The translations under genes were made by a program, and so were the position numbers. Below the pieces are notes generated by a model. That model did no database searches. It was given only the letters and a program-made list of their open reading frames with translations, and had not been told where the DNA came from. DNA of 64,000 nucleotides from Octopus sinensis (Eukaryota), in the NCBI RefSeq assembly GCF_006345805.1, contig NC_043013.1, forward strand, positions 14,818,001 to 14,882,000, in the 5' to 3' direction. This document shows, piece by piece, positions 1 through 48,368 of this stretch (the stretch's first letter is position 1; the number at the start of each line of letters is the position of its first letter).

Positions 1-177
1 ATGATCATGGCTGGAATGTCTTTGATCTTGAATCTCCTGAATCAGGATTGGGACGTTGGAGTCTAAACAGCAATAACTTGTTAGAAGTATTATAATGAAA
101 GAATTAAACATTTTCCAAATTTTTTTTTTTATGATATTTTTATTATTAATATTAAATTTGCTTTTTAGATTTTTTTT

Positions 178-7051: not shown

Positions 7052-7083
<32 letters not shown>

Positions 7084-8108: not shown

Positions 8109-8296
8109 GAAACAGAAGATAGGTTTAATACTAGTCTTTATTAGTACAACGATCGTTTCAACTCATCCTGCAACTGTCCATTATCAGTAGGCTTTTGCAC
8201 AAAATCCTACCACTACCCATAATGGACAGTTTGCAGGATGAGTCAAAATGATCATTGCACTGATGAAAGACCAGTGCCAAATCTATCTTCTATTTC
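8109..8296. repeat. Foldback element, arms of about 75 bp
   Basis: actcatcctgcaactgtccattat / ataatggacagtttgcaggatgagt, extending to gaaacagaagatagg / ctatcttctatttc. Confidence 0.8.
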
Positions 8297-9440
8297 TTTA
8301 ATAAATTATTACTATTTAAATTAATACTGCAGAATTCCTGAAGTAGATCCAGCAGAAATATACGCCAACCATGGATGTCACTAGGTAGCCCAAACTGTGA
8401 AGTGAATGTGCTTTACTAAACACACTAATTGACCCATTAGTCAAAAAAATTACATAGGGCATCCAGCTGTAGAAACACTGCCAGATCTGACTGGCCTGGT
8501 GCAGCCTTCGGGCTCCCCAGACCCCAGTTGAACCGTCCAACCCATGCTAGCATGGAAAACGGACGCTAAATGATGATGATGATGATGATGTATATGTGTG
8601 TGTGTGTGTGTGTGTGTTTGTCCCTCTAGCATTGCTTGACAACCGATGCTGGTGTGTTTACGTCCCCGTCACTTAGCAGTTCGGCAAAAGAGACCGATAG
8701 AATAAGTACTGGGCTTACAAAGAATAAGTCCCGGGGTCGATTTGCTCAACTAAAGGCGGTGCTCCAGCATGGCCACAGTCAAATGACTGAAACAAGTAAA
8801 AGAGTAAATATACATATATATACATATATATGTATGTGTGGAGGGGTAATGGCCTAGTGGTTAGCGCAGCGGACTCACAGTTGTAGGATCACAGTTTCGA
8901 TTCCCAGACCAGGTATTGTGAGTGTTTATTGAGCGAAAAACACCTAAAGCTCCACGAGGCTCTGGCAGGGGGTAGTGGCAATCCCTGCTGTACTCTTTTG
9001 CCACAACTTTTGCCAGCGGGGTGGCGTCACTTGAAGGCTAAAACAATGCAGAGTGCATTGTGACCAGCGATGTGTAGCAATATCTGATAGCCTGGTCGGT
9101 GACAGTGACGGTGATATATATATTCCAAGAAAGTTAGAGTTTGTGAATCCAACCAACTAAGGGATAATATTTATCCAATATACTGCTGGTAGAATACCCA
9201 ATTATTAATATACAAGTGGTTTTTTTTCATTGCATGGCAATTACACTACTGAATGTAATAAATGGGTGAGTGTAAAAGGTTTTTTTACCCTTAATTTATA
9301 TGGCAATAAGAAAATTGAAGGGACCAAGAGATGTATATTGTTATAATTGTTTTTTTAAAAAATAAATAAATAGACATAAAATAATGTCTAAAAGTTGATG
9401 AATACCACCTCTTGATGCCCTCCATTTTCTTATTGCCGAG

Positions 9441-9474
<34 letters not shown>

Positions 9475-9940
9475 AGGCTTCTGATTTTTCAGGCTTTATA
9501 CTCGGCTCCGGATAGGGTTTTAGGGAGATTTAGCTTTCTAGCCAGTTGAGCAATATATTGTATACTAGCTACAACTCTTTATACTATGGTCCCAACAGTA
9601 TATATTATAACCACAATACAATATCCTCAACCTACAAAGTCGAGATTCTAATATTTGTATATCTTTGTTGTCTGTCCTCTCTCCCTCCTTCTCCTTCACC
9701 CACCCTAACTGTGCACCATCTGTAATATATTGATTTATATGAGAAAAATTATCTATTGATTTCTATGATGATGATGATGATTATTATTATCTACATGCAC
9801 CTGTTTACTCAGAATAGCAAATAGGTCACAAGGTGTTGGATTACAAAGTGTATACACACACACACACACCCTGACTGATGTCTGCATAATATCGTAATTT
9901 TTATGTGTATGTATGTGTGTGTGTGCATGTGTATGTATGT

Positions 9941-9975
<35 letters not shown>

Positions 9976-9977
9976 AT

Positions 9978-10163
9978 TATTATTTAAAACAGTTTGATCC
10001 GGCTCCAGGCAACTTGAAGTTTTACAGGCTTCCAACAGAAATTCAGCTCGTTTAGATTACTGAATCTGATTTTGGTAATCTGAGCCTGAACAAGCTGGGT
10101 TTCTCTTAGAAGCCTGCAAGACTTTAAATCTCATGGAGCCAGATCAAACTGTTTTAAATAATA
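9978..10163. repeat. Foldback MITE-like element (186 bp)
   Basis: Terminal 30 bp tattatttaaaacagtttgatccggctcca / tggagccagatcaaactgttttaaataata (1 mismatch). Looser pairing continues to the centre. Confidence 0.85.
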
Positions 10164-10249
10164 CATGTAATTCCTACTAAATGTGTTGAGTGCCTTTCTC
10201 TTTCTTTTATCCACTCATTCATATATGTATATGTGTGTACATACATACG

Positions 10250-10281
<32 letters not shown>

Positions 10282-10290
10282 GAAAGAGGG

Positions 10291-10512
10291 GAGAGTTGGC
10301 CAAAAGTCACCTGACAGTAAATCAAAACCATTTAATTCCAAGATTAAAACAAAAAATTATTTTATATTAGACTTCGTTAATAGATAGACAAATGTTGAAA
10401 ACAAATGGTGATTTTAATTCACAGCATTCAATTATTGGAATGAATAAATGAAATTGAATATTAAGTACTTGGGAAATTTTGATTTACGTCGGGTGACTTT
10501 TAGCCAACCCTG
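10291..10512. mobile_element. Tc1/mariner-like MITE
   Basis: Imperfect TIRs of about 35 bp: gttggccaaaagtcacctgacagtaaatcaaaa / ttttgatttacgtcgggtgacttttagccaac. Confidence 0.75.
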
Positions 10513-11347
10513 TGTGTATGTGTGTGTGTGTGTAGACGGAAACTGTAAGAAGCCGTCGTATGTGTGTGTATATGTTTCTCTGTCTGTGTTTGTCCCCCCC
10601 CCCCCAACATCGCTTGACAACCGATGCTGGTGTGTTTATGTCCCCGTAACTTAGCGGTCCGGCAAAAGAGACCGATAGACTTACAAAAAATAAATCCTGG
10701 GGTCGATTTGCTCGACTAAAGGCAGTGCTCCAGCATGGCCACAGTCAAATGACTGAAACAAGTAAAAGAGTAAAAGAGAGTATACCTTGTGATATGCTGT
10801 TTAAAGCCCATTCACTGTATTGGGCTACCTGATGTCATCAACAGTATGCATATATATGCCATTGGGTTAACTTCAGGAATTCCTTCATGTCAGTAGAGAA
10901 AGGGACCGATGCACAATGGGTTGAAATGATCAAACTGATTAATAAAGTATCTCTTGAATTCCATTTTCTTGCTTGGAACATTGAAAATCAAACAGATGAA
11001 GCTGTAAATAAAAGTGTGTAAATATTGGGCTAAAACACATTTGGATAGAAAGTTGAAGGCTGTTTGTGGGATGTGAACCCACATCTGTAAACATACATGG
11101 CAGATGTTCTACCAGTGGACCAAAGCAATCCTTTGAAGTTTCCTATCCATTTTAGAAACTTGGTTCATACCAGCAAGAATTGTATCTTGTTGACATCATA
11201 ATAATTTATAAACATTGAGAGAACACGAAATGATTCTTATAATGTTAACAATGTGTGTGTGTGTGTGTGTAATGCTTTAGTGTTTCTTATGCAACCTGTT
11301 GTGCATAATCAGATGGTGCAGTTACAGGTGATATACTATGGAATAAT

Positions 11348-11579
11348 AAGGCAGCAAGCTGGCAGAAATGTTAGCACGCCGGGCGAAATGCGTAGCCATA
11401 TTTTGTCTGCCGTTATGTTCTGAGTTCAATTCTGCCGAGGTCAACTTTGCCTTTCATCCTTTCGGGGTCGATAAATTAAGTACCAATTATGCACTGGGGT
11501 CGATACAATCAACTTAATCCATTTGTCTGTCCTTGTTATCCCCTCTGTGTTTAGCCCTTTGTGGGTAGTAAAAAAATAG
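11348..11579 (+). mobile_element. tRNA-derived SINE family A
   Basis: Near-consensus copy. Others at 17338-17541 (internal deletion), 22391-22622, 60684-60912, all on +. Confidence 0.88.
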
Positions 11580-12079
11580 ATATACTATGGAATAACAAAA
11601 GAAAATTACAAAAATACAATTCAAATTCTAAAATACAATTCATATTCGAAACATTTCCAATGATGATCAACTTGAAACCTTGTCGCTTTTGAGTTTTTTA
11701 CTCTTCATAAGTTAGACCGGTTTACATTGTTATCAATAAACTGGGTAAAGTGAGGGAAAGAGAGAAATCAAACACGCTGAGAATAAATGCATTAATGCAC
11801 ACACATACTACTCAGAGATAGTGTATGTATACTTCCATGTGTCCGATTCTGTTCTGCAGCTCACCGTCAAGTTCTGCTTTTTAATAGAAAGTACCTCTAC
11901 TACTACGGATTTACATCAACCTGCTCTGCTATAGTGAGCCACCAAATCTCTCCTTATCAATCAATGCTCAACTCAGCACATCAAACAAAATGCTAAGCAG
12001 CATTTCTTTTGACTCTACATTTTGAGTCCAAATTTCACCAAGGTCGAGTGCCTTTCATCTTACTGGGGTTGATAAAATT

Positions 12080-12470
12080 AAAATCACTGATGTCGATGTC
12101 CTGTCTTCCCTTGAAATTTTCTGGCCTTGTACCACAATCCGATGCCATTCATTATCGAGATAGCAGAATTGTTAGCATATATCAGACATCTTGTTTTTGT
12201 CATGTTTCTTCCTGCTCTTCTGATAACATATCAACCCCAGTATTTGACTGGTACTTATGTTATCAGTCTTGGAAAGATGCAAGGTAGAGTTGACCTCAGC
12301 AGTATTTGGATGCAGAATCAGAAGAGCTGGACGAAACATAGCAAAACAAGATGTCTTATATGCTAACAATTCTGCTAGCTCAATAAAGAATGGCATCGAA
12401 TCGTGGTACAAGGCCAGAAAATTTCATGGAAAGATGGGAGTTAGTCTATTGCATCGACATCAGTGATTTT
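12080..12470. repeat. Local inverted duplication (arms 12080-12224 and 12317-12470)
   Basis: Arms are about 85-90% complementary and include a unique SINE-SINE junction sequence. Confidence 0.85.
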
Positions 12471-13041
12471 ATTTCTGGGGTTGATAAAATCAACTATTCC
12501 TGCTCACCCAAAATTTCAGGCCTCGTGCCTATATTAGCAAGAATTGTTATCATTATAACGTAAGAATGCATGGCCCAGTGCTCAGGGTTTTGCACTCACA
12601 ATTGTGAGACTGTGGTTTCAGTTCCTAGACTAGGTGGTGTGTTATGTTCTTGAGCAAAACACTTCGTCTTGCGTTGCTCTACAATCACTCTAACACCTGG
12701 CATGCAATGCACCTGATCAGCAACATTGATTTAATTTCATGGAGGAAGTGAGCTACTACCGTACTGTACATACATTTGATCATTATAAAAGAATCATCTG
12801 TTGCACAGGTTGTTCGGCAAAAAGCTGGACATTCATACATTGTCTTTGACAGGACAGTCCATCATTATCATTATTATTATTATTAAGGTGGTAGGCTGGT
12901 AGAATCATTAGCATGTGGGACAAAATGTTTAGCAGCATCTTTTCAGGGTTGGTAAAATAAACCCCAAGTACTGGGGTCAATGTAATAGACTTGTCCACTC
13001 CTCCTTAAAAAAAATACTACTTTTGTGCCAGAATTTGAAAC

Positions 13042-13094
13042 CATTATTATTATTATCATTATTATTATTATTATTACTATTATTATTACAATTA

Positions 13095-13136
<42 letters not shown>

Positions 13137-13276
13137 TACTATTATTATTACTATTATTATTACTGTTATTACTATTATTATTATTACTATTATTATTACA
13201 ATTATTATTATTATTATTATTACTATTATTATTACTATTATTATTATTACTATTATTATTATTACTATTATTATTA
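13042..13276. repeat. (TAT)n microsatellite, about 235 bp
   Basis: Long imperfect (att)n run at a SINE A2 tail. Source of the poly-Y/L/I/N ORFs. Confidence 0.97.
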
Positions 13277-14716
13277 AGGTGGCAAGCTGGTAGAATCGTT
13301 AGTATGCCAGGTAAAATGCTTAGGGACATTTCTTCTGTCTTTACATTCTGAGTTCAAATTCCACTAAAGTCAACTTTCCCTTTCATCCTTTTGAGGTCAG
13401 TGAAATAAGTACCAGTTACGAACTAGGATTGATATAATCGACTAACCCCACCCTCAAAATTTTAGGCCTTGTGCTTTTAGAAAAAAATAATTTTTTTTTT
13501 TAAAGGCGGCAAGCTGGCAAAATCGTTAGCACACTGGTCGAAATGCTTAGCGGCATTTCGTCCAACTTTGTGTTCTGAGTTCCATCAAGATGACATTGCT
13601 TTTCATCCTTTCGGGATCAATAAAATAAGTACCAGCTGGGCTCAATGTAATCGACTAAACCCCTCCACCCCCAAATTTCAGGTCTTATGCCTTCAGTGGA
13701 AAGAACTATTGTTATTCATCCAATTTATTTTAAGTGGTTAATAGCAAATCCTTTATTTTATTATTTCAGAAAAATCCCATCCAGCTGTTTCCCTCTCAAT
13801 AATCGGTTTTTACTCTGTTTAGTTACACCCACAACTTGTCTGGTAAACATACTGCCAGCGCAAGAGAGAGAGAGAGAGAGAGACACATGTATAATTTTGA
13901 TTGCCATATCTTTACATATACACATACATACATATATATATATAGATAGAGAGATAGAGTGGGTGACAGAGAGGGGTGAGAGATATAGTTATTGATGGGC
14001 AGAAAGATAAAACTACGCACTTTTAACTTATAATTTTGTTCATAGCGAGGCATATGTTTATCTATTGACTTCAGCACCTTAACTGGTCATTTGATCTCTT
14101 TCTCACTTTGATCCTGACACAAAGCTATTTCTTATCATCTGTATTGATTATTTAAAATGTCTACTACCTTTTTTTATTACTATTATTTTTTTCCCCCCTG
14201 AATTTATATCACCTGTTGTAATAATTACCTTGTTAGTGATTAAAACAAAATCAAAAAGTGACAGTAAATCACTTGACAAACCTTTGCTTTCTTTTCTATA
14301 GCGTTTCTCTCAGGGATGGCAGTATTGTGGGGTGTCTTTTCCATCTACCAACAACCTTGCTAAGTTATGCTGTGATAGGGTCTTATATAGGCATAGGCAT
14401 GAGTGTGTATTTAAGAAGCTTGCTTCAATGACCATATCGTCGAAGGTTCAGTTCCACTATGTGGTACCCTGGGCAAATATTTTCTATTTTATGTCCAAGC
14501 AAAACAATGCCTTGTGAGCAGATTTAGCTGACGGAAACTGAAAGAAGCCCTTTGTGTATATGTGTGTGTTCACATGTATGTATGTATTTGTGTGTACCCT
14601 TTACTTGCATGTTGTGATGTTAAACAAGATACTCAACAGCAACTGGGAATTGACCTTGCAATGGACTGGCATCCACACGAGTGTGTATGTGTTAATTAAG
14701 ATGCATTTGTACAAAC

Positions 14717-14747
<31 letters not shown>

Positions 14748-15161
14748 TACATATTTAAAAACAAACACACATATAGATATATGTAAAAATATTTGTACAT
14801 GCATATGTGTATTAGAAGGGGCAGGTGTTTTCAGTTCCACTAGGCAGCACTTTGGACAACTGTATTTTACCATAACTCCAGACCATCAAATGCTTTGTGA
14901 GGGAATTTGGCATAGAGACCATCGTTGTGTGTATGTGATTGGGAATAATTGCAAAACTAGAAGTTGATGTGTTGAATGCATTTAATACACACATTTTAAG
15001 TAGTTACATAAGATAATCATTCTGTAATACTATCCTCTTCAGTTGATATCTCTATGTGTGCGTGCATGTGTCTGCATATGTCTGAATGCTTACAAATTTA
15101 CAATTTGGGCCACAGCTACAAGTATCAGCATTTTTAATTGAAAACAGTGACATTTGTTGAG

Positions 15162-15843
15162 ATCATCATCATCATCACACATCCATTTTCCATGCTTGCT
15201 TGGGTTGAATGGTTTGACAGAAGCTGACCAGCTGAAGGGTTGTTCAGGTTCTGGGTCTGTTTTGGCATGGCCTTCTTAGCACCAACCACTTTACAGAGTG
15301 TACTTGGTACTTTAAGCAGCACCAGTACAGGTGCTTCTTATGTGGCACCAGCACTTACAAGCCCGCAAGATTAGGGATGCTCAGCTGGAGAGGGTTGTAA
15401 GGGGCAAGCCTGTATGGAAGGGCAACCACATTTTTACTTATACTGACGTATCTTTTCAAGCACAGCAATCTGCCAGGAGTCTCAGTCCCCTGTCATCCCT
15501 TTTGTGAGTCTCAGCATCTGTAGATCCTTTCTCACCACTTTGTCCCATGTCTTCCTGGGTCTACCCCTTCCACACGTTCCCTCTACAATTAGAGATCGGC
15601 ACCTCTTGATGCAGCTGTCTTCATTCATAGGCATTACATGGCCATACCAGTGCCCATCTTCTCTCTTGCACACTACGCCTGATGCTAAATATACCCAGTT
15701 TTTATCCCAAATCACTTACACTGTCGTATATGCACACTGACATTACCCATCCAGCGAAATACACAGGCTTCATTTCTTTCAAGTCTTTGCATATCCTTAG
15801 TACTCACAGCCTATGTCTCCTCACTACCATGTAGCGTAGCTGT

Positions 15844-15845
<2 letters not shown>
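15162..15845 (-). mobile_element. RTE-clade LINE, 5'-truncated 3' end (ORF2 C-terminus, 3' UTR and (GAT)n tail)
   Basis: ORF 15482-15715 contains WYGHVMPMNEDSCIKRCRSLIVEGTCGRGRPRKTWDKVVRKDL, a typical RTE C-terminus. It runs directly into the CCAACCC/CATGGAAAA...GATGATGAT tail seen in many short copies. Confidence 0.85.
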
Positions 15846-15882
<37 letters not shown>

Positions 15883-15995
15883 ATTAATCAGCCAAAATTG
15901 CGAGGATGATCCGGTTCTTGACTGAAGATTGAAGGCTTCGAATGACCCATCCTTGTTTTTTGTGTTAAAATGTTTTGCATTCTTGTCCCAGTTTG

Positions 15996-16050
<55 letters not shown>

Positions 16051-16074
16051 GTACATATATGTATATATAAGTGA

Positions 16075-16469
16075 AGGAGTGGCTGTGTGGTAAGTAGCTT
16101 GCTTACTAGCCACATGGTTCCATATTCAGTCCCAATGCATGGCATCTTGGGCAAGTGTCTTCTACTATAGCCTTGGGCCAACCAAAGCCTTATAAGTTGA
16201 TTTGGTAGATGGAAACTGAAAGAAGCCCATCGTATATATGTATATATATCTATATATATGTATGTATATGTTTTTGTGTCTGTATTTGTCCTCCTACCAT
16301 CGCTTGACAACCGATGTAGGTGTGTTTACATCCCCGTAACTTAGTGGTTTGGCAAAAGACCGATAGAATAAGTACTAAGCTTACAAAGAATAAATCTTGG
16401 GGTCGATTTGTTCGACTAAAGGTGGTACTGCAGCATGACCACAGTCAAATGACTGAAAGAATAAAAGAA
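16075..16469 (+). mobile_element. tRNA-derived SINE family B, full length
   Basis: aggagtggctgtgtggtaagtagcttgc...cttgggcaagtgtcttc...gacaaccgatg...ggggtcgatttg...gactgaaa. Other copies at 32215-32618(+), 17866-18238(-), 8590-8810(+), 10520-10780(+), 7800-8065(-). Confidence 0.88.
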
Positions 16470-16774
16470 CATACAAATCATTTTGACAGTTGAACTCTAA
16501 ATAAATGAAGCATGTAGAATGCTGGGTTAAAAATTACTTTGGTTGGGAGGGAAAACTGCTGCCTGAGAAGCATGAACCCACATCACCTGTGAACATAACA
16601 GACATTCTACCATCATACCAAAGAAATTCAGTGGATTTTCTCTATCCACTTTAGAAGCTTTGTCCTTATCAGTGAGAATTCTATAGTTTGTATTATAAGA
16701 ATATTTATTTATATCATTTTTTTCATTTAAAAAAAATAGAGAAGTAGGAAATAAACCATTTATAATGGTTAGGT

Positions 16775-17044
16775 CAGTGGTTCCCATAGTGAGCAGTACT
16801 GTCCCTCTGGGAGCTGTGGAAAGGTTCAGGGTTGCTGAAGAAGAGCAGGGACGATAATGGGTTGGCCAAAAGCGGGCAATGGATGTAAAAACAGCAAAAT
16901 AATGGGTTATGTTTTATTAGTGAAATACAGTTGTTTTGAAATTGATACAGAAAGTGGGCTACATTTGTATTGGTGAGGTGGGGAGCGCTAGGAATGTGGC
17001 CTGGGTGCTAAGCGTAACAGCCTAAATAAGTTTGGGAACCACTG
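16775..17044. mobile_element. hAT (Charlie/Buster-like) MITE
   Basis: TIRs CAGTGGTTCCCA / TGGGAACCACTG. The 8-bp flanks GGTTAGGT and GTGTAGGG share the nnnTAnnn pattern (decayed TSD). Confidence 0.75.
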
Positions 17045-18878
17045 GTGTAGGGTCAAAGTAGATAAAGCTATAAATATTAGCATGAAAGCTATTGGTTTAA
17101 AAAACTCCTTGGGTAGAAAACAGCCAATGACTACCTACTCCCCACAAATCTTATAATGTAGATAATATGTATATGTGTGTCTATCTATATATAAGTACCA
17201 GCCTTCAAAAGAAAAGTAAGTACTGGGGTCGATTCATTCAACTAAAATTCTTCAAGGTGGTGCCCCAGCATGGCCACTGTCTAATGACTGAAACAAGTAA
17301 AAGATAAAAGGTGTATATATATATATATATTACACATAAGGCGGCGAGCTGGCAGAAACGTTAGCATCCGCCGTTACGTTCTGAGTTCAAATTCCGCCGA
17401 GGTCAACTTTGCTTTTCATCCTTTAGGGGTCGATTAAATAAGTACCAGTTACGCACTGGGGTCGATATAATCGACTTAATCCGTTTGCCTGTCCTTGTTT
17501 GTCCCTTCTGTGTTTAGCCCCTTGTGGGTAGTAAAGAAATATATATATATATATATATTTACACACACACACATACACATGTATATGTACATACATATAA
17601 TAAGACAGACCTATCTCTTGTCAGTTCATGGAATTTCCTCTTCCAGTGTCTGATGCTGTGCAGGAGATAACTACAATGAAATGCATGCATCCATATCCGT
17701 CTGGGTAAGGGGCACCTTGAACTGACTTGACGTGTTTACACTGATTTATCTACAGCAAAAAAAATTTTCTCCATGACGTTAAATGATGATGATGATATAT
17801 ATACATATCATCATCATCATTTAACGTCCGCCCTCCATGCTAGCATGATATAATATATATGTACATTACTTGTTTCAGTCATTAGACTGTGACCAAGCTG
17901 AGGGACTGCTTTGAAAAACTTTTAGTTGAATGAGCCACTCCCAGGACTTATTTTTTAAGCCTAGTATTTATTCTATTGGACACTTTTGCCAAATCACTAA
18001 GTTACAGGGATGCAAACACATCAACACCGGTTGTCAAGCAGGTTGGGGTGGGGGACAAACATGCACATACATATATATATATATATATATATATGACAGG
18101 CTTCTTTTAGTTTCCATCTTCCAAATCCACTCACAAGGATTTTGGTCGGTCTGAGGCTATAATAGAAGGCACTCGGTCTAGTGTGACTGAATCCAGAACC
18201 ATGTAGTTGGAAAGCACACTTCTTACCACGCAGCCACGCGTGTGTGTAGATATCTGTGTGTATGTATATGTGTGTATATATGTGTGTGTATGCGTTTGTA
18301 TATATGCATGTGTGTGGTGTGTATAGTTTCCGGTTCTTTTAATTACATTGAAGCCCTAACTCTTGTTGGAAGAATTTAGAAATATTTATCCAAATAGCGG
18401 AACTAACCAGGAAATAGTTTTCTGTAATATTTCCCCTCTATGCTCATTCCACAGTACACTCTGCCACTATGATAACATCTTACTAGGATGGGATTGTTAG
18501 ATCTAAATAACTTCCATTTGGTTTTAGTCAGTCTCTATAATGTCTAAGGAAACACATTAGCCTTATGTTTCATTCAATTGGTTTTGATAGTAATTTAAAT
18601 TGGAGCGGATTTTGGAAAATAACTAACTTTCCCATTCATTGGTTTGTTTAGATGGTGCTTGGAACAAAAGCGAAATATATATTAGTATATTAAGATGTTT
18701 GTATTAGGAATATAATATAGCAAAATGCAAATGTAAATTGGTAAACTAAAATGCCATTTGATATATAAAAATGACAACTGTATATTGGTATACTATGATG
18801 GTGTTTGGTACATAAAAATGGGAAGTATATATTAGTATGTTAAGATAGTGCTTGGTATATAACAAAATATAAGTAATG

Positions 18879-19085
18879 TCTGTTGTGTCTGGGGAGAGTC
18901 CTTTTTGTGCCTTCTTATTTAACACAATCACCGGTAAAATTTCCACTTTTTTCTTATTTTCTTATATGTGTAAAATTATAAAAATAAAAAAAATTTTTTA
19001 AATAAGAAAAAAGTAGAAATTTTACCAGTGAGTGTGTTACATTATAAGGCACAAAAAGAAAATGACTCTCCCCAGACACAACAGA
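18879..19085. repeat. Foldback element, arms of about 82 bp
   Basis: tctgttgtgtctggggagagtc...ccacttttttcttattt / aaataagaaaaaagtagaaattttacc...gactctccccagacacaacaga. Confidence 0.85.
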
Positions 19086-19899
19086 ATATGCTTCAACACA
19101 CGAACTCATATAAAGAATCTTGCAAACCAAATCCAAAAACGAAATAAAATATAAGTATATATTGGGATAATAAGATAATGTTTGAAACATGACGAAAGAC
19201 AAATGTATATTTGTACATTAAGATGTTGTTTGGGATGAAACCAAAGATAAATATACATTGATGTATTAAGATGGTGTTTGAACACAAATCTCAGATGTAT
19301 AAATTTGAGGAGAACTCTTGTTAAATCATTTGAAATTTAAGGAAGGTGTGTGTGTGTGTTTCTCAAAGAACTGTTGTTTCTGTTTACGTAATCCTGCTCT
19401 TCCACCTAACCACAAAGTATATTCCAAGACCTGAATGGTTTAATTATAATTCTCATCAAGTTTTAATTAACATTACCTATGTATTTGATACATATATAAT
19501 AAAAAACCACATGAAAATACAAATCCACTCTGTGGGGTGGTTGGTGTTAGGAAGGGCATCCAGCTGTAAAAAACCATGCCAAAACAGTCACAGTAGCCTT
19601 GTGTAGTCTTCTCCCTGGCCAGCTCCTGTCAAACTGTCCAACCCATACCAGCATAAGAGCCCACACATTCTTACAAAACGTGTGTGTGTTACAGAGAGGA
19701 TATGTGAAGGGGATGTACATATATATATTTATATATAAAGCTGCAGTTGTCTGTGTGTGGCAGGTTTGGTAGCCTTCAACTAACACTATCTCCTCCAAGA
19801 CCCTGCGGTGCAAGTTGACTAAAATTGAGAGTATGATAGAAGAAGGTTTGCTCTTCATTCTGTAGAAGAAAAAATTCAAATCAGACCATGTTAAGACCA

Positions 19900-20121
19900 A
19901 AAATTATTTACATCAAAAAGGTGCTTTTTTTCTATGAAAATCTCTGTTTTTTACGATTTTTTGACTGCTGTGTCACCATTTTTCAGTGTATTTCAACCAG
20001 AAAAATGTTCACTTAAAGAGAATAACAAGCTACATGACGCAAAATTTTTACTTTTCAAAAATTCCAATTCTAAAGGGTCGAAAAGAAAACAAACCCAAGC
20101 AACGCCGGGTTATACTACTAG
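19900..20121 (+). mobile_element. Helitron 3' fragment
   Basis: Ends CCCAAGCAACGCCGGGTTATACTACTAG|T, the same terminus type as 59230-59627. 5' boundary uncertain. Confidence 0.7.
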
Positions 20122-20470
20122 TATATGTATAAAAATGGAAAAACTCTATTAAATAAAGTAAAAAAGAACTACTCAAACAATAAAGAAGGTGCTGTTTTTG
20201 TTACAAGAAGTTTTCCACATCCTTAAAAGAAAAAGCCCCCTTCCTTCAAAAATAACCCCTCCATCAAAACCTTTATTTAGCTAAATCCACCTTTATTAAA
20301 TGTTCTATATTTGACCTGTTCATCATGACCTGATCTGGTTGTCTTTTCTCTCTTTTTTTTTCTCTTCTCCCCCCTCTCTTTCTTTCTACCTCCTTTCTTT
20401 CTTTCTTTCTTTGCTGCCGTTGCCACTGCTTGGCTGGATAAAAAAAAAAAATTGGTAAATTTCTCTACAG

Positions 20471-20554
20471 ATCAAAGGAATTAATCTGTCAGGGCTTGGA
20501 ACCCCCCAGTTCTGTCAGTTTGTCCGCGATAGAAGTAGACGCTTGCTACAGTCG
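20471..20554 (+). CDS. DMXL2: Probable in-frame cassette exon of the DmX-like gene (28 aa: IKGINLSGLGTPQFCQFVRDRSRRLLQS)
   Basis: tttctctacag acceptor, TCG|gtaaga donor, 84 nt, phase 0-0 and no stop, so it fits between exons ending 4525 and starting 30491. No AG dinucleotide in 20281-20468. Long upstream pyrimidine tract and downstream YCAY cluster. Confidence 0.72.
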
Positions 20555-20876
20555 GTAAGAGCACAGCCTAACCACCTCCACCACCATCACCACCTCCACC
20601 TCCTCCTCCTCCACCATTGTCCCCCCTCACTCCCACCTTTCCGTTTATTCATTTGCTTGGTACCATTGTAGTCGTTGTTCTTGCTCACCCTGGTGTTGTC
20701 ATCGCTGTTGTTGTTGCTGCTGCTGCTGCTGCTGCTCTTATGAATGTTGTCTTTTAATCATATTATTTTTACCGTTTCCTTATTTAGATGCTTGCAGTTT
20801 TAACTTGTATATGCATGTTTGGATAGGTGGATATATGAGTGTGTGTGTGTGTATGTAATATGCACATATGTATGAA

Positions 20877-21303
20877 TGCATGTCTGCACACCTGTGCACA
20901 TACACATCTGTATACCTGTATATATGGAAATGTATTCATATGCTCATTTAAAGTTTATCTGGTGTATACTTATGTGTGTGTGCTTATGTGTGTATATATG
21001 TGTGTGTATGCGTAAGCACTTGCATGTCTACACACCTGTGCACATACACATCTATATACCTGTATATATGGAAATGTATACATATGTTCATTTAAAGTTT
21101 ATCTGGTGTATACATATGTGTGTGTGTTTATGTGTGTATATATGTGTGTGTATGCATAAGCACTTGCATGTCTACACACCTGTGCACATACACATGTATA
21201 TACCTGTATATATGGAAATGTATACATATGCTCATTTAAAATTTATCTGGTGTATACATATGTGTGTGTGTTTATGTGTGTATATATGTGTGTGTATGCA
21301 TAA
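20877..21303. repeat. 144-bp tandem repeat, 3 copies
   Basis: Units start tgcatgtct(g/a)cacacctgtgcac at 20877, 21021 and 21165. Confidence 0.92.
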
Positions 21304-24300
21304 GTATGAGTGTGTGTATAAGCACCTGCACAGAAAGCTGTGCATGTTTGTACAGAAAGGTTATGACATCTGTCGAGATGCATGTGTGTATGTTTGTTAG
21401 AATGTAAGTTATAATTTCGGCATCATATATATATATATATCTATATATATATATATATAATTTGCATATGTGTGTATGTATACATTTGCATGTGTAAGTA
21501 TATATACACGTGGATACATAAATATGTATATATACATGCATATATATAATTGTTGATGTGTGTGTGTGTGTGTATGTATTTATGTATGTGAATATGCATG
21601 TATGTATATATGTGTGTATATATGACAGATTCAAACATGGAGTAACGTGGGTACAATATTTAGCCCATGTTGAGACTAGATTCATCTTCTCTTTGGTTTA
21701 TTTTTCGTTTTTCTTTTATCACAACCGTTATATATATATATATATATATATATATGCGTGCGTGAGTGTGTGTATATAGCACAGTTTTATTTACTTGTTT
21801 CTGTTTTGAACAGTCAGCACCACTACCACCACCACCATCCCTGCCCCACTCCCCCAGTCCCCCTGTGACACACCTGGAATATCTTAGTGCATCTTTCTGC
21901 AAATATCAAAGACACCTTTCTCACTCATTTCACTGCGTAGTATTCTTCAATATTTTTGCAATATTCTTTCGTTAGACAATTTTTGTTTCATAGAATTACA
22001 TTTTCTTTGTGAACGACTTTTTGTTAGTGTTCTGGTTCTTGTCATTGTTTTTGTTATTGTTTGTTTGTTTGTCTGTTTTTTGGGTTGTTGTTTCTTTTTT
22101 GTTTTTGTTTTGTCTTTGTCAGTTTTTAATATTTTTGTTGTTTTGTTTCTGTTTTTTCTAAAAATCTTAAATAGAACTTTCGATATTGTCTTTTTTTTTT
22201 ACCTTTTTATCAATTCCATTTTTTTATTAATTCTGTCTTTTGACTTTTTGACCTCCAGCATTGCCTGGCACATGAAAGCATTTGAATAGTTGGTAATCCT
22301 TCTGTGTGTGTGTGTGTGTGCACATGGTTCTTTTATTGTCAATGTTATGTATGTGTGTGTGTGTATATATATATGTATGTATGTCTGTATAAGGCTGCAA
22401 GCTGACAGAAACGTTAGCACGCCAGGTGAAATGCTTAGCGGTATTTCGTCTGCCGTTATGTTCTGAGTTCAAATTCCGCCGAGGTCGACTAAACCTTTCA
22501 TCCTTTCAGGGTCGATAAATTAAGTACCAGTTGCGCACTGGGGTCGATGTAATCGACTTAATCTGTTCATCTGTCCTTGTTTGTCCCCTCTGTGTTTAGC
22601 CCCTTGTGGGCAATAAAGAAATATATATGTATGTATGTATATATGGAAATCCTTAAAAAGATAGACATTGTTCTATGTTTGTGTTTGCATGTGAATATAT
22701 GTGTACGGTTTCTTATATTCTCCATGTTATGTCTATAACACAATTCTCTGTGTGTTTGTGTATAAATGCATGTGGATATTCTGTTTCATATATGTGTGTG
22801 TGTGTGTGTATTTATGTATGTGAAAGTGCACAAGTAGATGAACACAGTCCTGTGTGTGTATGTGTGTTTTTATGTATGTATGTGTGTATGGTTCTTTATA
22901 TATTCTCTTTATTACTCTTATATATACACATGTGTGTGTGTGTGTGTTTGAATGTATTTATGTATGCATATGTATTTAATGACATTTTTTATATAATCTT
23001 TCATATTGTATTTATATGCCTACAACCTCAATATATTGACAACTATAGGCAATAAAAATTTAAATAACTACTTTTAACCATAGGCTGAAACAGCTGTAAG
23101 AAGTGATTTAATGATTTCAATAATTTATATTATGATTTTTATAATTTGTATTCTTATCTTATATGTATTGAATTATAAGATATATATGTATGCTATTAAG
23201 GTTCTCATTTTGTTAAATGAATGAATAATTCAACATTCTAATATCCGAAAGTTGATGAACAAACTAAATTTGTTTCTCCATTTTCTTATTTGTATCATAT
23301 ATATATACATATAGATAGATAGATTGTTATTACATTGAGTGTATATTGATTCTCTTTAACTTAACAGTATTATAATTAATTCACATTACTCTACTAAATA
23401 AATTAATAATATTTGTGTGAATGCATTTTGTGTGTTTTTGCTGTTCCTATGTCTTTAAATTTTTTCTCATTTTAGTAGTTTTAAACTAATATGCAAATGT
23501 ATTTTTACCGGAATCATTTTTTTCTTTCAGACATAGTGCATATAGGAATACATTATCTAATTATCTAATGTGTCCTTCCTTTCTTTTAAAATGTTTTTTA
23601 AGATGGTAGTGTGATATAAGAGATTTAATTGCTGTTCTTAACAACTGCAGAGGGGCTCCCTTGTCTCATTGCTTAGTTTTGTTTTGTTTTTTTGTTTTTT
23701 TCTGTCTTTGTATGGTCGTAGATCTGTATCCCCTGATAGAGCAGGTTTCTGATCAAAGTCATTTAGTCTTGACTCTCTCCTCTTTTCAGATGAATTTGCC
23801 ATGGCTGGATGACATAATTCAGCTCAGACTAAGCTATCCTATGGTTTTTTAAAAAAATTTTTTAAAAGATGTGGCTGCTATTTCTACTGATCATATGGAA
23901 ATACTCATTTACCTGTTGCTTTGTTGTTGGTGTAATTACAGCATTGTATGTTAATTTCAAGGATAACTGGTGATTGGTCTGTTGGAATCATCAACCATAC
24001 AGTTAAATTATGATATAGAATAAATTTAAAATTTCCTCACCATTCTTTATCCCATTGATGACATTAGCATAAAGATCTTATTATTAGCATAAAGGTCATG
24101 TCATTAGCATAAAGATCTTCCCAAGATACAACAAAATCTGTTTTAACACACAAATCCACATCAAGAAATTTACAAACCAAATACAAAACTCAAATATTAT
24201 AAACTTCAACCAAGCTCGCAGGGTGCTCAAAAACATTGTGTTCTGCTAGATCAGAATAACCACCCAACAGCTTTGCTTCATTATTGCATTAGGTAAAGAG

Positions 24301-25597
24301 GGTATTTCGTTGAAGTCACAAATGGCAATGAAAGGACTGACAAATGTGATTGATTGACTGACTGACTAAATGATTAATCAAACAACTGAGTAGTTAATTG
24401 GTTATATGGTTAGCTAATTATAACAAAAGAAGTGAAATAGAACCAGTGCATGTGTTTCTTATTCCCATCATGAATCATGCAAACCAGATAAAAATATGCA
24501 ATAGTTTAAGAAATCTTTTCTCTACCCCTTTAGTATTTAAACCAGCCATATCTAGCCCAAATATTCTACCTGATTTATATTCAAACAGTCCAGATCCAGA
24601 CTCTCACACCTACCCTACAATATCATTTCTTAAAATGTACAATTACATCATCAAAATCTCCAAGCTATGAGATAACGCGTGATTAATTCAAAGTAGTGCA
24701 AATAAATAAGTACTACATCTTTTGGGCAAAAAACTCAAGGTCGGATACTCTTTGACTACACCTCGTACGTATATGAACTGTAGCTTAACAATCAATTTTG
24801 AGAAGCTAATCTAAATAATACAGAGACACTTGAGAAAGATTCACTTGTGTATAATTCTTGAATGTTATCCAACCCAGCACTCTTCTCTTTCAATCATTTT
24901 CTTTCAAAATACACAATCGCTATTTCATTGACCTTGCAGAATCAAAATTCTTATTTAATATCTTTAATAGAAATAAAAACAGTAAAGAAAAGGAAAAAAA
25001 TACATTGAGGGGTTTTTAATTTCATTAAATATTTTCTTAAGCTAGATCGTTGGCATTATGTAGATATTTTCAGTTAAAATATTTTGGGAGGTTTTCTGTA
25101 AAACATTTTTAATACTATGTTTGGTGTCTAATTTCATATGGACTCAATATGGCCCATTGTTTATGCATGGCATTAGCAAATTTAAAAAAACAGGTCACAA
25201 GTGATGTGATTTGAATAGTAGCCCCGCTAACGTTATGTCCTATGTTTGTTGTATGTGGCATAATCTGGGGAAACGGTTCTTCAAAAGGAGAAGCTGGATT
25301 GTTCCATTTAGTTCTCACAGTACCGCTCTGGAGGGTTTTGCTATTTGTGAATTTTTCAGAAGGAAAAAATCCCATTGAATGAATATGAGTTGTTTGATAT
25401 CTATATATATTTTTTTTATATAGATACACACATACATGTGTATGTACATTCATTCATACATACATGTGTGTGTGTGTGTGTAAACTTCAAGCTATTGATT
25501 AATATTTATCCTAGATAAATAGACAGACAGAGAGACACACAGAGAGGTGTGTATTTATATATGTTTGTAAACATACACCCACATAAAATTATAAGAA

Positions 25598-26060
25598 AAC
25601 CTACAGAGAGCCACAGATCGACTGTGTAGAAAGTGTTAAGTTCCAGCCAAACAGACATGGTAGTATTATAATACTGTAGATAGTTATAAGTGCCGAGAAA
25701 CAGGCCTAGACAGGTGACAAAAAGAGGAGAGGGTAGCAAAGAGCAGTATGAGGTAAGTAGAAGACAAGTTGGATGTCAAGTGTACTTGACAAAGGAAGAA
25801 GAGGTTTTCACATGTTCGACAATGTGAAGATGAGAGGCACGAAGCATTCCAGATTGCAAAGTGGTGTACTAGAAATGGAGATATTGCTACGGAGAAGTGT
25901 GTACAGAATGATAGCATTACACTTGTTCTTAATGGTACCAAAAAGAAAGAGGCATGGAATTGCTATTATGAGAAGTTGCTGAAAGACGAGAATGAATGGG
26001 AGAAAGCATATACCTCAAGTTGACCCAACAGAGATATTAGCCATTCCAGGTGACAATGGT
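25598..26060 (+). mobile_element. Degenerate RTE LINE ORF2 fragment (endonuclease-RT linker)
   Basis: Broken reading ...QVYLTKEEE...EKCVQND...KKEAWNCYYEKLLKDENEWEK...VDPTE resembles the RTE linker as I recall it. Stops and frameshifts present. Runs straight into the 36-bp array. Confidence 0.7.
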
Positions 26061-28091
26061 CACCTGTACAATTAAGCCATTCCGGTTGACTATGGTCACC
26101 TGTACAATTAAGCCATTCCGGTTGACAATGGTCACCTGTACAATTAAGCCATTCCGGTTGACAATGGTCACCTGTACAATTAAGCCATTTCGGTTGACAA
26201 TGGTCACCTGTACAATTAACCCATTCCAGTTGACAATGGTCACCTGTACAATTAACCCATTCCAGTTGACAATGGTCACCTGTACAATTAAGCCATTCTA
26301 GTTGACAATGGTCACCTGTACAATTAAGCCATTCCAGTTGACAATGGTCACCTGTACAATTAAGCCATTCTAGTTGACAATGGTCACCTGTACAATTAAG
26401 CCATTTTAGTTGACAATGGTCACCTGTATAATTAAGCCATTCCAGTTGACAATGGTCACCTGTACAATTAAGCCATTCTAGTTGACAATGGTCACCTGTA
26501 CAATTAAGTCATTCTAGTTGACAATGGTCACCTGTACAATTAAGCTATTCTAGTTGACAATGGTCACCTGTACAATTAAGCCATTCTAGTTGACAATGGT
26601 CACCTGTACAATTAAGCCATTCTAGTTGACAATGGTCACCTGTACAATTAAGCCATTCTAGTTGACAATGGTCACCTGTACAATTAAGCCATTCTAGTTG
26701 ACAATAATATGGTCACCTGTACAATTAAGCCATTCTAGTTGACAATGGTCACCTGTACAATTAAGCCATTCTAGTTGACAATGGTCACCTGTACAATTAA
26801 GCCATTCTAGTTGACGATGGTTACCTGTACAATTAAGCCATTCTAGTTGACGATGGTCACCTGTACAATTAAGCCATTCTAGTTGACGATGGTCACCTGT
26901 ACAATTAAGCCATTCTAGTTGACAATGGTCACCTGTACAATTAAGCCATTCCAGTTGACAATGGTCACCTGTACAATTAAGCCATTCCAGTTGACAATGG
27001 TCACCTGTACAATTAAGCCATTCTAGTTGACAATAATATGGTCACCTGTACAATTAAGCCATTCTAGTTGACAATGGTCACCTGTACAATCAAGCCATTC
27101 TAGTTGACAATGGTCACCTGTACAATTAAGCCATTCTAGTTGACAATGGTCACCTGTACAATTAAGCCATTCTAGTTGACAATAATATGGTCACCTGTAC
27201 AATTAAGCCATTCTAGTTGACAATGGTCACCTGTACAATCAAGCCATTCTAGTTAACAATAATATGGTCACCTGTACAATTAAGCCATTCTAGTTGACAA
27301 TGGTCACCTGTACAATTAAGCCATTCTAGTTGACAATGGTCACCTGTACAATTAAGCCATTCTAGTTGACGATGGTTACCTGTACAATTAAGCCATTCTA
27401 GTTGACGATGGTCACCTGTACAATTAAGCCATTCTAGTTGACGATGGTCACCTGTACAATTAAGCCATTCTAGTTGACAATGGTCACCTGTACAATTAAG
27501 CCATTCCAGTTGACAATGGTCACCTGTACAATTAAGCCATTCCAGTTGACAATGGTCACCTGTACAATTAAGCCATTCTAGTTGACAATAATATGGTCAC
27601 CTGTACAATTAAGCCATTCTAGTTGACAATGGTCACCTGTACAATCAAGCCATTCTAGTTGACAATGGTCACCTGTACAATTAAGCCATTCTAGTTGACA
27701 ATGGTCACCTGTACAATTAAGCCATTCTAGTTGACAATAATATGGTCACCTGTACAATTAAGCCATTCTAGTTGACAATGGTCACCTGTACAATCAAGCC
27801 ATTCTAGTTAACAATAATATGGTCACCTGTACAATTAAGCCATTCTAGTTGACAATGGTCACCTGTATAATTAAGCCATTCTAATTGACAATGGTCACCT
27901 GTACAATTAAGCCATTCTAGTTGACAATGGTCACCTGTACAATTAAGCCATTCCAGTTGACAATGGTCACCTGTACAATTAAGCTATTCCAGTTGACAAT
28001 GGTCACCTGTACAATTAAGCCATTCCAGTTGACAATGGTCACCTGTACAATTAAGCCATTCCAGTTGACAATGGTCACCTGTGCAATTAAG
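26039..28091. repeat. 36-bp minisatellite, about 56 units, with a 555-bp higher-order repeat
   Basis: Unit ccattctagttgacaatggtcacctgtacaattaag. Seven 41-bp variants (+aatat). The variant pattern recurs at 26700, 27255 and 27810. Confidence 0.97.
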
Positions 28092-28095
28092 TCTT

Positions 28096-28306
28096 CAGCA
28101 TTTAAACTAACCATATTCAACCCAAATATTTTACCTGTTTTATGTTCAAACTGGCCAGCTCCAGCCTCTCACACCTACCCAACATTGTCATTGTAAAAAT
28201 AAGCAATTGCATCATTGAAATCTAAAAGCTACAAGATAAAGCATGGTTAAATTTAATGTGAATCAATGGCCATTACATCTGATAAATCTTAATGTTAAAG
28301 GGTTAA
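28096..28306. mobile_element. Second TTAA-ended MITE family of about 220 bp (decayed copy)
   Basis: Shared core cctctcacacctaccc and end aatg(c/t)taaagggttaa. Other copies at about 3625-3805, 24525-24720, 36885-37100. Confidence 0.65.
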
Positions 28307-28717
28307 AGTTTGAAGACAAGGAAAATGACTAGACTGTGAAGAATAGTTGCTGTGACACTTGAAATATCTGTCACAATAAGTCCCATGGGAGTCACTTGTA
28401 TAGTTAACCAGATAATACAGTGAGATGTCTTACTTAATGACTGGTGAAGTAATATCATTCTGAACTACTGTTTCCTTCTTGCTTGATGAGGCTGATATCA
28501 TCCCATGTTGATAGTTTCAGAGTTGTCATCATGTGTAGAGCCATTCAGGTCCACATGTGCTCTCCATCGCTAGCAGTCCGGTACCAGCCCCTCTGCAACC
28601 TCCAAGGTGACGTTGAGCCTCTAGAGATCTCCCCCAATCACATCCAGTCATTTGGTGTGGGAGAGCCAGCTATGAGGTCTCTTCCAGCCTGCAAAATAGA
28701 TATATAAAGAGAGGAAG

Positions 28718-29035
28718 CTGACTACAGAGGTATCAAAATTGTTGGATCAGGTGATGAAAACTATGGAAAGAGTTATAGCATAACTGATTAGATACAGTAG
28801 TTGTCCAGATGAGATGAAGTTTGACTTTGTACAAGGAAGAGGTGATGACATATTCCTAGAAGTAATAGCCAGGGGTAAGTCACAATACTGAGCATTCATC
28901 AGCCAGGAGAAAGGCATTTCTCAGGGTTCGAGGTTCTGTAGTCTGGTGGTCACTAAGGAAGCTAAGCATTAGATGAATGGTTTGTGAGAGCTATGCAAGC
29001 CATGTACAAAAGTCAATCATTATGGTAAGAGATAG
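28718..29035 (+). mobile_element. Degenerate RTE LINE reverse-transcriptase fragment
   Basis: YRGIK/LLDQVMKTMERVIA*LIR...DEMKFDFVQGRG and VWWSLRKL...DEWFVRAMQAMYK are RT N-terminal motifs of RTE elements, with frameshifts. Confidence 0.75.
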
Positions 29036-29040
29036 TAATC

Positions 29041-29300
29041 ATTATCATCATCGTTTAACGTCCATTTTCCATGCTAGCATGGGTTGGACGGTTTGACCAG
29101 GGTCTGAGAACCAGGAGGCTGTACCAGGCTCCAGTCTGATCTGGCAGTGTTTCTACAGCTGGATGCCCTTCCTAACGCCAACCACTCCATGAGTGTAGTG
29201 GGTGCTTTTTACGTGCCACTTGCACGGAAGCCAGTCAAGATAGCGCTGGCATCGACCTCATACGGATGGTGCTTTTTACATGCCACCGGCACAGGTGCCA
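29041..29300 (-). mobile_element. RTE-tail repeat (family C)
   Basis: Same diagnostic core and (cat)n end. Other copies at about 3452-3625(+), 8456-8590(+), 30933-31280(-), 33225-33486(+), 34738-35010(+). Confidence 0.85.
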
Positions 29301-29567
29301 GGGTAGGCTGGCAATATGTTCAAATTCTCACATCTTCCAACAGCAGACAAATTTTTATTTAGGTCAGCTGTGATCACATCTCCCAATAGCAGCCAAAATT
29401 TACTCAACATAGCAGTGCTTACATCTCACAACACTTGACAAACGTTACTGAAGACAGTCATTTCTACATCTTCTAACAGCAAACTTTTCACAGTGCGGCA
29501 GTGCTCAGATCTCCCTATAACAAACTTTCTCCAATCTTGACAATTTTACTAAATATTTTAAAAAAGA

Positions 29568-29661
29568 TTTTCGTCGCTTTGAGACCGCGACCTGTTCACT
29601 GACAAAACATCACACACGAAGTTTTGTCAGTGAACAGGTCGCGGTCTCAAAGCGACGAAAA
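29568..29661. repeat. Perfect 41-bp inverted repeat with 12-nt loop
   Basis: ttttcgtcgctttgagaccgcgacctgttcactgacaaaac is exactly complementary to 29621-29661. It is the core of the family at 48077-48333. Confidence 0.95.
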
Positions 29662-30490
29662 TATTTTGACAAATTATATTTAAATTTTTAAAAAAGTTTA
29701 TAGAAAAAGAGATATGGAATACAAGCTCTGGAATAGCAAATATTATTTTCATCTGTTTAACAGTGACTACTCCTTTTATGGCTTTGTTCAGAGACAGAAG
29801 AGCAATACCTGGGATTTTTTTGTCGTGGTCTCCAAAATTGTTGTGGTATTTCAGTGACAATTCATGGCTTAGAGATTAGAATTTCTTTTCTGAATGTTTT
29901 CTTTATAGTTTCACCAATATTTTTGTTGTTTTTGTTTGGCTATTCCAAAGTTTTTGTAGCTTTCTTTTAACTTTGCATCTCATTTCTGTCATCACATTTG
30001 TCAGTTGTTCATCTAAAACCTAAGTAGTTTTTGTGGTTCTTAGTTTTTCAGGCAGACATTATCTTAGTTTTATCTTCTTAGCTTTTTCTTTGTTATTTTA
30101 TTTTTTCTCACAATCAAAAAAAAAAAATCCATGAATTTCATTTCCATTTCAATTTCCAGTAGAATAATTAAATGCCATGGTCATTTGCCATTTTTATTTC
30201 TTCTCTAATTTCTAGACATTAAAATTTTTTTTTTTAAACAAAACACAATGTCAGCCATTTTGTATGAGTGCATTTTTTTTTTTTTTTCAATCTCAATAAT
30301 TCTCATTGTTCTTTCTTTTTCTATAAATTGACCTATTTTACAATATATGTCATCTGTAATAGTATGCTAATTAGAAATCCATGTTGTATTTGCATGTTGA
30401 TAATTCAGTGAAGGTGATTTAATGAAATGTTTCCGTCTTTTCTTCTCTCTCTCTCTTTATCACTCTCTTGCTCTCTCTCTGACTCATCAG

Positions 30491-30551
30491 ATAATTCAGA
30501 GAAATGTCACTGGTGTCAGAAGAATTGGAGCTCACCCCCATCTACCTCACT
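30491..30551 (+). CDS. DMXL2: DmX-like protein exon (start of C-terminal WD40 propeller)
   Basis: (ct)n...catcag / gtaag boundaries. IIQRNVTGVRRIGAHPHLPH resembles DMXL LMKRNLHNVKRMTSHPVHQY. Phase 0 in, phase 1 out. Confidence 0.93.
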
Positions 30552-33777: not shown

Positions 33778-33908
33778 ATCTGACCGGGAGCACTGATGGC
33801 AGTGTCCGCATGTGGGAGTGGGGCCATCACCAGCCATTGTCTCTGCTACGACAGCCTGGCTGTTTCTCAAAGGTCACCCGTACCCTATTCAATGCCCAAG
33901 GTAATAAG
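33778..33908 (+). CDS. DMXL2: DmX-like protein WD40 exon
   Basis: tatacag / gtaag boundaries. YLTGSTDGSVRMWEWGHHQPLSLLRQPGCFSKVTRTLFNAQGNK resembles YLTGAQDGSVRMFEW...VTRLYFNSQGNK. Confidence 0.97.
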
Positions 33909-48333: not shown

Positions 48334-48364
<31 letters not shown>

Positions 48365-48368
48365 CTTT

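Follow-up and report, generated by a model that had tools for sequence, protein, structure and literature searches.

A conserved, frame-preserving exon of the octopus DMXL gene, probably optional, whose upstream intron fits a distant branch point

The 3' part of the DMXL (Rabconnectin-3a) gene lies on the + strand of a 64,000-nucleotide (nt) stretch of the Octopus sinensis genome (contig NC_043013.1, positions 14,818,001 to 14,882,000; hereafter, the window), and the 25,965 nt that separate two of its coding exons, 4357-4525 and 30491-30551, contain an 84-nt exon, at 20471-20554, that specifies 28 amino acids. The explanation that best accounts for the observations, to which we assign a probability of about 0.7, is that this is a very old and optional exon of DMXL, whose inclusion is regulated through a distant branch point. 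An earlier note on this DNA, made from the letters alone, had pointed to a hidden, stop-free cassette exon of phase 0-0 at this place, and all of the sequence facts that it listed are present; as it also said, the exon does not appear in the list of open reading frames (ORFs) of 60 amino acids. The exon is of an ordinary kind, a cassette exon that is conserved and keeps the frame, and deposited protein models of other animals already contain it.

To judge from its sequence and that of its relatives, 20471-20554 is a genuine coding exon of octopus DMXL. It has usable 3' and 5' splice sites (Table 1), its phase is 0-0 because the flanking exons meet at codon boundaries (the end at 4525 and the start at 30491), and the reading frame is kept when it is skipped. 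The 28-residue segment could be aligned in Lottia, Candidula, Tegillarca, Timema, Ephemera and Amblyomma, as well as in two transcript-derived proteins, and in all of them it occupies the same position, after ..GRGxxV and before [IVL].[KRQ][RH]..GVRR..HP. The similar insert that the earlier note had suggested for arthropod DmX proteins is therefore real: it reads MKGLNFPGSHDPRFCQFVIDRSRHLLKP in Timema and is found in Ephemera and Amblyomma too, and the Lottia version is VKNFHIPGVNNAFMTNFIIDRSWRLINL. Conservation follows the pattern xKG....G....F.Q.V.[DE]RS[RK].L[LI], with 16 of 28 residues (57%) identical between octopus and Timema and all 28 identical between Diploptera and Timema. When eight homologous peptides were compared by tblastn with the six frames of the window, the best match was always 20471-20551 (E from 7e-8 to 0.06), and every match elsewhere in the window had an E value of at least 0.4.

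This comparison, which the earlier note had proposed for mollusc and arthropod DMXL, extends to the genomic loci of eight species (three molluscs, four insects and one tick), and each of the eight fetched genomes has, within the matching intron, an intact 84-nt exon of phase 0-0 that is flanked by AG upstream and GT downstream. Because the orthologous exon is retained in the genomes of both phyla, it is older than the split between molluscs and arthropods, which by our estimate puts its age at more than 500 million years. The deposited segments (Lottia LOTGIDRAFT_166979, Timema podura DmX-like protein 2, and those of Ephemera, Amblyomma, Tegillarca and Candidula) stand at the same protein position as the octopus one and share with it the 84-nt length, the phase, the splice boundaries, the K and G residues and the [DE]RS[RK].L core; the octopus exon differs in its much longer introns (15.9 and 9.9 kb), in having microsatellite arrays of its own and in its longer AG-free zone. 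In the Tegillarca gene model the cassette begins 6 nt late (GIHIPG), and the genome itself reads VKGIHIPG after the AG (L005 17507-17590).

A sequence of only 84 nt, surrounded by low-complexity DNA, might be an open frame that arose by chance, or a decayed pseudo-exon, and never be spliced. We give this reading next to no weight, since chance would account neither for 57% identity with insect orthologues at the exact position in the protein nor for equal length, phase and AG/GT boundaries across nine genomes. The tblastn homology of the peptide led us to reject it, and the conserved exons of other genomes effectively refute it.

Is the exon optional? Across protostomes it is, so far as mRNA sequences and gene models tell, as both occur with and without it. 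An intron-free arthropod mRNA (Logan transcript L001, SRR14381432) reads ..GSQTGRGASV/MKGLSFPG..LLKP/VQKHRVDG.., i.e., the inclusion form, and an intron-free gastropod-like mRNA (Logan transcript L002, SRR32835202) reads ..GRGTSV/NMRRAVTGVRR.., i.e., the skipped form. The product of the latter (P0007) is about 90% identical to a representative of 1375 amino acids that includes the segment (P0193), outside a single gap that corresponds exactly to the 28-residue cassette VKSLSSLGIQNPALTHCILDRSRRLIGV. In Diploptera punctata (P0014), Aedes albopictus (P0011) and Laodelphax striatellus (P0015), the deposited gene model leaves out the cassette although the genome conserves the exon, and all of the vertebrate DMXL1 and DMXL2 sequences that we retrieved are without it. 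An exhaustive search with a profile of database proteins uncovered a third, diverged group of long DMXL representatives, some of which have a cassette-like ..P[FW]IIDRS[RK]..L.K.. and others of which do not. A dipteran-like genomic ORF from Logan (P0091) reads GRGTSM-VSVPTLLTCSHMLNLCFPLRQ-VLRHKV; because only about 66 nt separate its flanking exons, the cassette has apparently been lost from this lineage.

The coding sequence itself may carry a trace of regulation. Between Timema and Diploptera, identical codons are used at 20 of 27 degenerate conserved residues of the cassette, against 13 of 51 in the two neighbouring exons (Fisher p = 8e-5), and such synonymous constraint is often seen in regulated exons. 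Searching with the flanks plus the insert returned two fragments only; a profile search with an alignment of the junction returned mostly single-exon genomic ORFs of insects and no new cassettes.

Variation at this junction takes other forms as well. Near the GRGTHV codons of L003 (Logan SRR26445938), a lophotrochozoan transcript (P0005) skips the cassette and has 24 extra in-frame bases, CTGAAGCGCCAGTTAAAACACCAG (LKRQLKHQ), ahead of the downstream exon. Because this extension ends in CAG, it looks as if an alternative 3' splice site had been used 24 nt farther upstream. A search of the octopus intron for a second micro-exon, like the eight-residue variant of P0005, gave none, and no AG occurs within 75 nt of 30491.

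In octopus, it is the upstream intron that suggests how inclusion might be controlled. The 188-nt AG-free stretch noticed earlier is there (Table 1), and the gene's remaining 10 acceptors in the window have zones of 18-130 nt (median about 56). The branch-like TTGAC and CTGAT are likewise in place, with TTCAT in addition; all four matches to yUnAy within the zone lie at least 138 nt from the exon, and the proximal 137 nt contain no match to it. The pyrimidine tract, described before at nearly the same position, includes (TCTT)n at 20377-20412 and is one of two places on the + strand of the 64 kb at which 70 nt are at least 95% pyrimidine. Nearer the exon, the pyrimidine fraction of the last 40 intron nt is 0.42, the lowest of 11 acceptors. 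An AG-free run alone is nothing special, because there are 11 gaps of at least 180 nt in this microsatellite-rich window: what matters is that the run is placed at the weak acceptor of a conserved exon.

The whole layout fits an exon with a distant branch point, as had been suggested, the position of that branch point being predicted from motifs. Among human exons, those with AG-free zones of at least 100 nt show an excess of cassette splicing (Gooding et al. 2006; PMC1431707), and the octopus exon resembles this class in having a zone above that length, branch consensus and pyrimidine tract at its far (5') end with none near the acceptor, and a likely cassette status. It differs in that the exons of that class are human and were verified by mutagenesis, whereas the octopus exon is known from its sequence and its AG-free runs are inflated by microsatellites. 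RNA structure that would bridge the distant tract and the acceptor was considered and rejected, as 20281-20480 folds no better than shuffled sequences do (z = +0.84).

The weak and atypical 3' splice site of the octopus exon, with its short proximal pyrimidine run and its A12 spacer, makes regulated inclusion via a distant branch point the most likely mechanism. Under this proposal, splicing would draw upon the long pyrimidine tract and on branch-like motifs some 140-160 nt upstream, within the AG-free zone, and inclusion would be modulated by putative proteins attached to the pyrimidine-rich, C-rich and CUG arrays on either side. Skipping would leave the reading frame intact; inclusion would add 28 residues of basic character, with a low-confidence helix, before the propeller.

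One candidate for such a protein is a PTB-type repressor. As in classic exons of the distant-branch-point type, it would sit between branch point and exon, here on the 75-nt UCUU/CUCUCU tract, and would allow inclusion where the repressor is low. The composition of the tract and its place inside the AG-free zone fit this possibility, known distant-branch-point exons carry regulatory elements in the same interval (PMC1431707), and another study associates purine-rich spacers between the pyrimidine tract and the 3' AG with alternative exons (PMC6339879). The support is at the level of motifs, however, and the tract is not conserved in other phyla; it may instead be the functional polypyrimidine tract of the distant branch point, or a neutral microsatellite. 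We hold the PTB reading as tentative: it is compatible with regulated inclusion through a distant branch point and goes beyond it by naming the regulator.

Downstream of the donor there are two more arrays. About ten YCAY motifs followed by a run of (TGC)n had been reported here, and there are in fact 11 YCAY, at 20572-20633 (+18 to +79 from the donor), and then (GCT)11. Nine of the 11 are CCAY and derive from an (ACC)15 array at 20571-20616. At least 10 YCAY per 66 nt occur at two places on the + strand of the 64 kb, of which the cassette cluster is one, and (CTG) repeated at least five times occurs at a single place on the + strand of the window; three microsatellite blocks are held by 1.4% of 480-nt segments. 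Arrays of these types occur so seldom on the window's sense strand that their grouping around the exon is suggestive.

Poly(C)-binding proteins on the CCA array, to which C-rich RNA is equally suited, or a PTB-type repressor on the UCUU tract fit the sequence as well as Nova does, and DMXL2 acts at synaptic vesicles. These points bear in opposite directions on the proposal, made in the earlier note, that inclusion is neural-specific, with Nova/Pasilla acting on the YCAY cluster and MBNL on the (CUG)n. When Nova/Pasilla sites lie downstream of an exon they promote its inclusion, and fly and mouse share this regulatory map (PMC3165201); the octopus cluster, with its density and its place less than 100 nt downstream of the 5' splice site, shares the enhancing position of these cassette exons, and a role for DMXL2 with the V-ATPase is documented (PMC12527914). 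It differs from them in being a CCA-type microsatellite, its motifs being mostly by-products of the repeat, and no comparable cluster stands beside the orthologous exon in the eight other genomes (0-4 YCAY in +1..100). Moreover, motifs of this type are frequent and often non-functional (PMC3165201). For MBNL the picture is similar: (GCT)11 does supply a cluster of YGCY in the flanking intron, but it is a microsatellite and is not conserved in the eight genomes. Because the motif counts fall inside microsatellites and these flanks are not conserved in the eight other genomes, control by Nova or by MBNL, and the neural prediction, are conjecture. We consider the proposal as a whole quite unlikely. 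More improbable still is the fuller scenario in which the ancient cassette acquired, in octopus or perhaps in cephalopods, a composite switch built entirely from sense-strand microsatellites, with a distant branch point and UCUU tract on the upstream side, (CCA)n and (CUG)n on the downstream side, tissue-specific (e.g., neural) inclusion and a basic helical insert beside the C-terminal propeller that tunes the reassembly of the V-ATPase on synaptic vesicles by mRAVE.

What might the insert do? DMXL proteins drive reassembly of the V-ATPase on lysosomes and synaptic vesicles. By alignment and by an AlphaFold2 model, the insert falls about 10 residues before the C-terminal WD40 propeller, which agrees with the earlier placement immediately ahead of the last propeller of Rabconnectin-3a. 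In the model, which was made for an arthropod orthologue and starts at the cassette, the propeller begins at about residue 37 with a predicted local distance difference test (pLDDT) score above 90, and a helix is drawn with low confidence at cassette residues 12-25. In octopus, the peptide carries a net charge of about +4. DMXL is the large subunit of the RAVE complex of metazoans, which reassembles the V-ATPase and in which DMXL1/2 is joined by WDR7 and ROGDI; V1 binding there is assigned to a helical bundle, and no role is given for the region of the cassette (PMC12527914). The vertebrate DMXL1 and DMXL2 of that complex have an orthologous C-terminal propeller (about 50-54% identity) and presumably the same role in V-ATPase assembly, and nothing that corresponds to the 28 residues is present in those vertebrate sequences that were retrieved (GxxV is followed by [LM][MI]K[RK]..). 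We infer that the insert may be an optional basic helix or linker that alters docking or binding by the C-terminal propeller.

Several observations weigh against the explanation that we prefer. The evidence for optional use comes wholly from species other than octopus, the inclusion and skipping forms each come from a different species, and the skipped insect gene models could be annotation misses. The signal of synonymous constraint is absent in pairs with Laodelphax, and pLDDT is about 46-62 across the cassette. Furthermore, the flanking arrays, (TCTT)n, (ACC)15 and (GCT)11, are all microsatellites and are not shared with other phyla, the AG-free zone of the eight other genomes being 46-153 nt long. 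Finally, all three mollusc gene models that cover the site (Lottia, Candidula and Tegillarca) include the exon, which fits constitutive use in molluscs.

Were the exon constitutive in octopus, i.e., always spliced in, the "26-kb intron" would be an artefact of an exon too short for the ORF track. Besides the mollusc gene models, this alternative can draw on an amino-acid conservation that equals that of neighbouring constitutive exons (octopus against Timema, as given above) and on a decent donor with G at -1 and GTAAG. But a spliced, mollusc-like transcript skips the exon while a close relative includes it, the exon is symmetric at 84 nt, vertebrate DMXL does without it, and the octopus exon has the weakest 3' splice site and the longest AG-free zone in the gene. 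Constitutive splicing therefore seems unlikely to us. On the evidence from other species, the octopus exon is probably a cassette, and its gene presumably produces both isoforms.

A frame-preserving, omissible insert that molluscs, insects and ticks have retained next to the C-terminal propeller suggests a conserved means of producing the complex in two functional forms. Literature searches on alternative exons of DMXL2 / Rbcn-3A yielded no description of this exon. It also bears on annotation: an exon of 84 nt is readily overlooked within a 26-kb intron, and three insect gene models miss theirs. In octopus, the exon offers a concrete three-junction test of regulated splicing.

Table 1. Positions of the predicted exon, its flanking intron elements and the other DMXL exons in the window, and of the orthologous exons in the loci of other species.
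Feature	Position	Strand	Remarks
DMXL exons	3141-3259, 3979-4104	+	End coordinates approximate
Upstream DMXL coding exon, ..YGYDESDFVLVQTPFDQL..NRANV	4357-4525	+	Phase 0 end, GTT then gtaagt
Intron before cassette	4526-20470	+	15,945 nt
AG-free zone	20281-20468	+	188 nt; previous AG 20279-80
Candidate distant branch sites TTGAC (20311), TTCAT (20319), CTGAT (20330)	20311-20334	+	138-157 nt from exon; motif-level
Pyrimidine tract, UCUU/CUCUCU-rich	20338-20418	+	About 75 nt; at least 95% pyrimidine; ends about 58 nt before acceptor
Spacer, tract to 3' AG	20419-20470	+	A12 run 20440-20451; 9-nt proximal pyrimidine run (ttctctacag)
Predicted cassette exon, product IKGINLSGLGTPQFCQFVRDRSRRLLQS	20471-20554	+	84 nt, stop-free, phase 0-0; acceptor ..ttctctacag then ATC, donor TCG then gtaaga
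5' splice site, TCG/GTAAGA	20555-20560	+	
Intron after cassette	20555-30490	+	9,936 nt
(ACC)n/(CCT)n microsatellite	20571-20636	+	11 YCAY (9 CCAY, 2 UCAY)
(GCT)11, (CUG)n in RNA	20704-20736	+	Gives YGCY; +150 to +182 from donor
Downstream DMXL exon, IIQRNVTGVRRIGAHPHLPH	30491-30551	+	cag before ATA; start of C-terminal WD40 propeller; phase 1 end
Last six DMXL exons, part 1	33778-33908, 38671-38748, 40283-40427	+	
Last six DMXL exons, part 2	42664-42753, 44292-44419, 45331-45540	+	Stop TGA 45538-45540
Orthologous exon, Lottia	L004 7983-8066		Mollusc
Orthologous exon, Tegillarca	L005 17507-17590		Mollusc
Orthologous exon, Candidula	L006 12524-12607		Mollusc
Orthologous exon, Timema	L007 2443-2526		
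Orthologous exon, Amblyomma	L008 17998-18081		Tick
Orthologous exon, Diploptera	L009 18236-18319		
Orthologous exon, Aedes albopictus	L010 7240-7323		
Orthologous exon, Laodelphax	L011 8291-8374		

The exons of the gene were placed in the window by eye and by reading frame, and the gene is DMXL / Rabconnectin-3a, of the Rav1 family, as judged by its orthologous C-terminal WD40 propeller. A protein search with the spliced octopus C-terminus produced 71 matches, among which the entries of Timema, Tenebrio, Danio and others are named DmX-like protein 1 or 2; the Lottia protein matches at 73% identity and 99% coverage. Searches of PDB sequences returned generic WD40 proteins only and no DMXL chain. 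In Lottia, Tegillarca and Candidula, the Rav1p_C domain (PF12234) belongs to the gene model next upstream, and its octopus counterpart lies upstream of the window. In the assemblies of these three molluscs (L004, L005 and L006), DMXL is split into two gene models, with the break ahead of the cassette and close to where the C-terminal part starts. The Tegillarca locus also has, directly after the real one, a second and diverged copy of the next-but-one exon (AILFYGWGHIQPLTMLSQPG..; L005 20723-20830). Beyond the stop codon of the octopus gene, in 45541-64000, DMXL exons were the sole target and no further coding exon of DMXL was seen; the rest that was seen there is microsatellite-rich repeat.

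Two other cephalopod sequences bear upon the flanking exons. A genomic ORF from Logan (P0001) matches the upstream exon 4357-4525, and a contig of a more distant cephalopod (L012; ENA ERZ21867824 ctg112919l) has its own copy of the 30491 exon, with 100% conservation of the amino acids. No cassette was found in the 8 kb upstream of this copy, the part of the contig covered (10 kb around the downstream exon) stopping short of the cassette site. At 14042-16071 of the same contig, the DMXL exons have 74-81% nucleotide identity to the window and the introns do not align; its intron after the YLTGS exon contains retroelement ORFs (rve, RVT_2).

Repeats within the window make up 35% of its sequence. 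Two interspersed families occur on both strands, with translated motifs LQLDALPNANHS.SVVGAFYVP and FAFHPFGVDK.STSY, at sites such as 5902-6162, 11350-11514, 17365-17514, 29147-29362, 43823-44084, 52234-52449, 55326-55619, 55873-56061 and 60655-60888. The exon had been said to lie in a block free of transposable elements within an otherwise saturated intron, an argument that we set aside as not distinctive: although 20154-20796 is single-copy in the window, no more than 35% of the intron is repeated, and nine unique blocks are longer. Directly 3' of the stretch discussed here, three tandem copies of a 144-nt unit occupy 20877-21304 (96% matches; Tandem Repeats Finder score 793).

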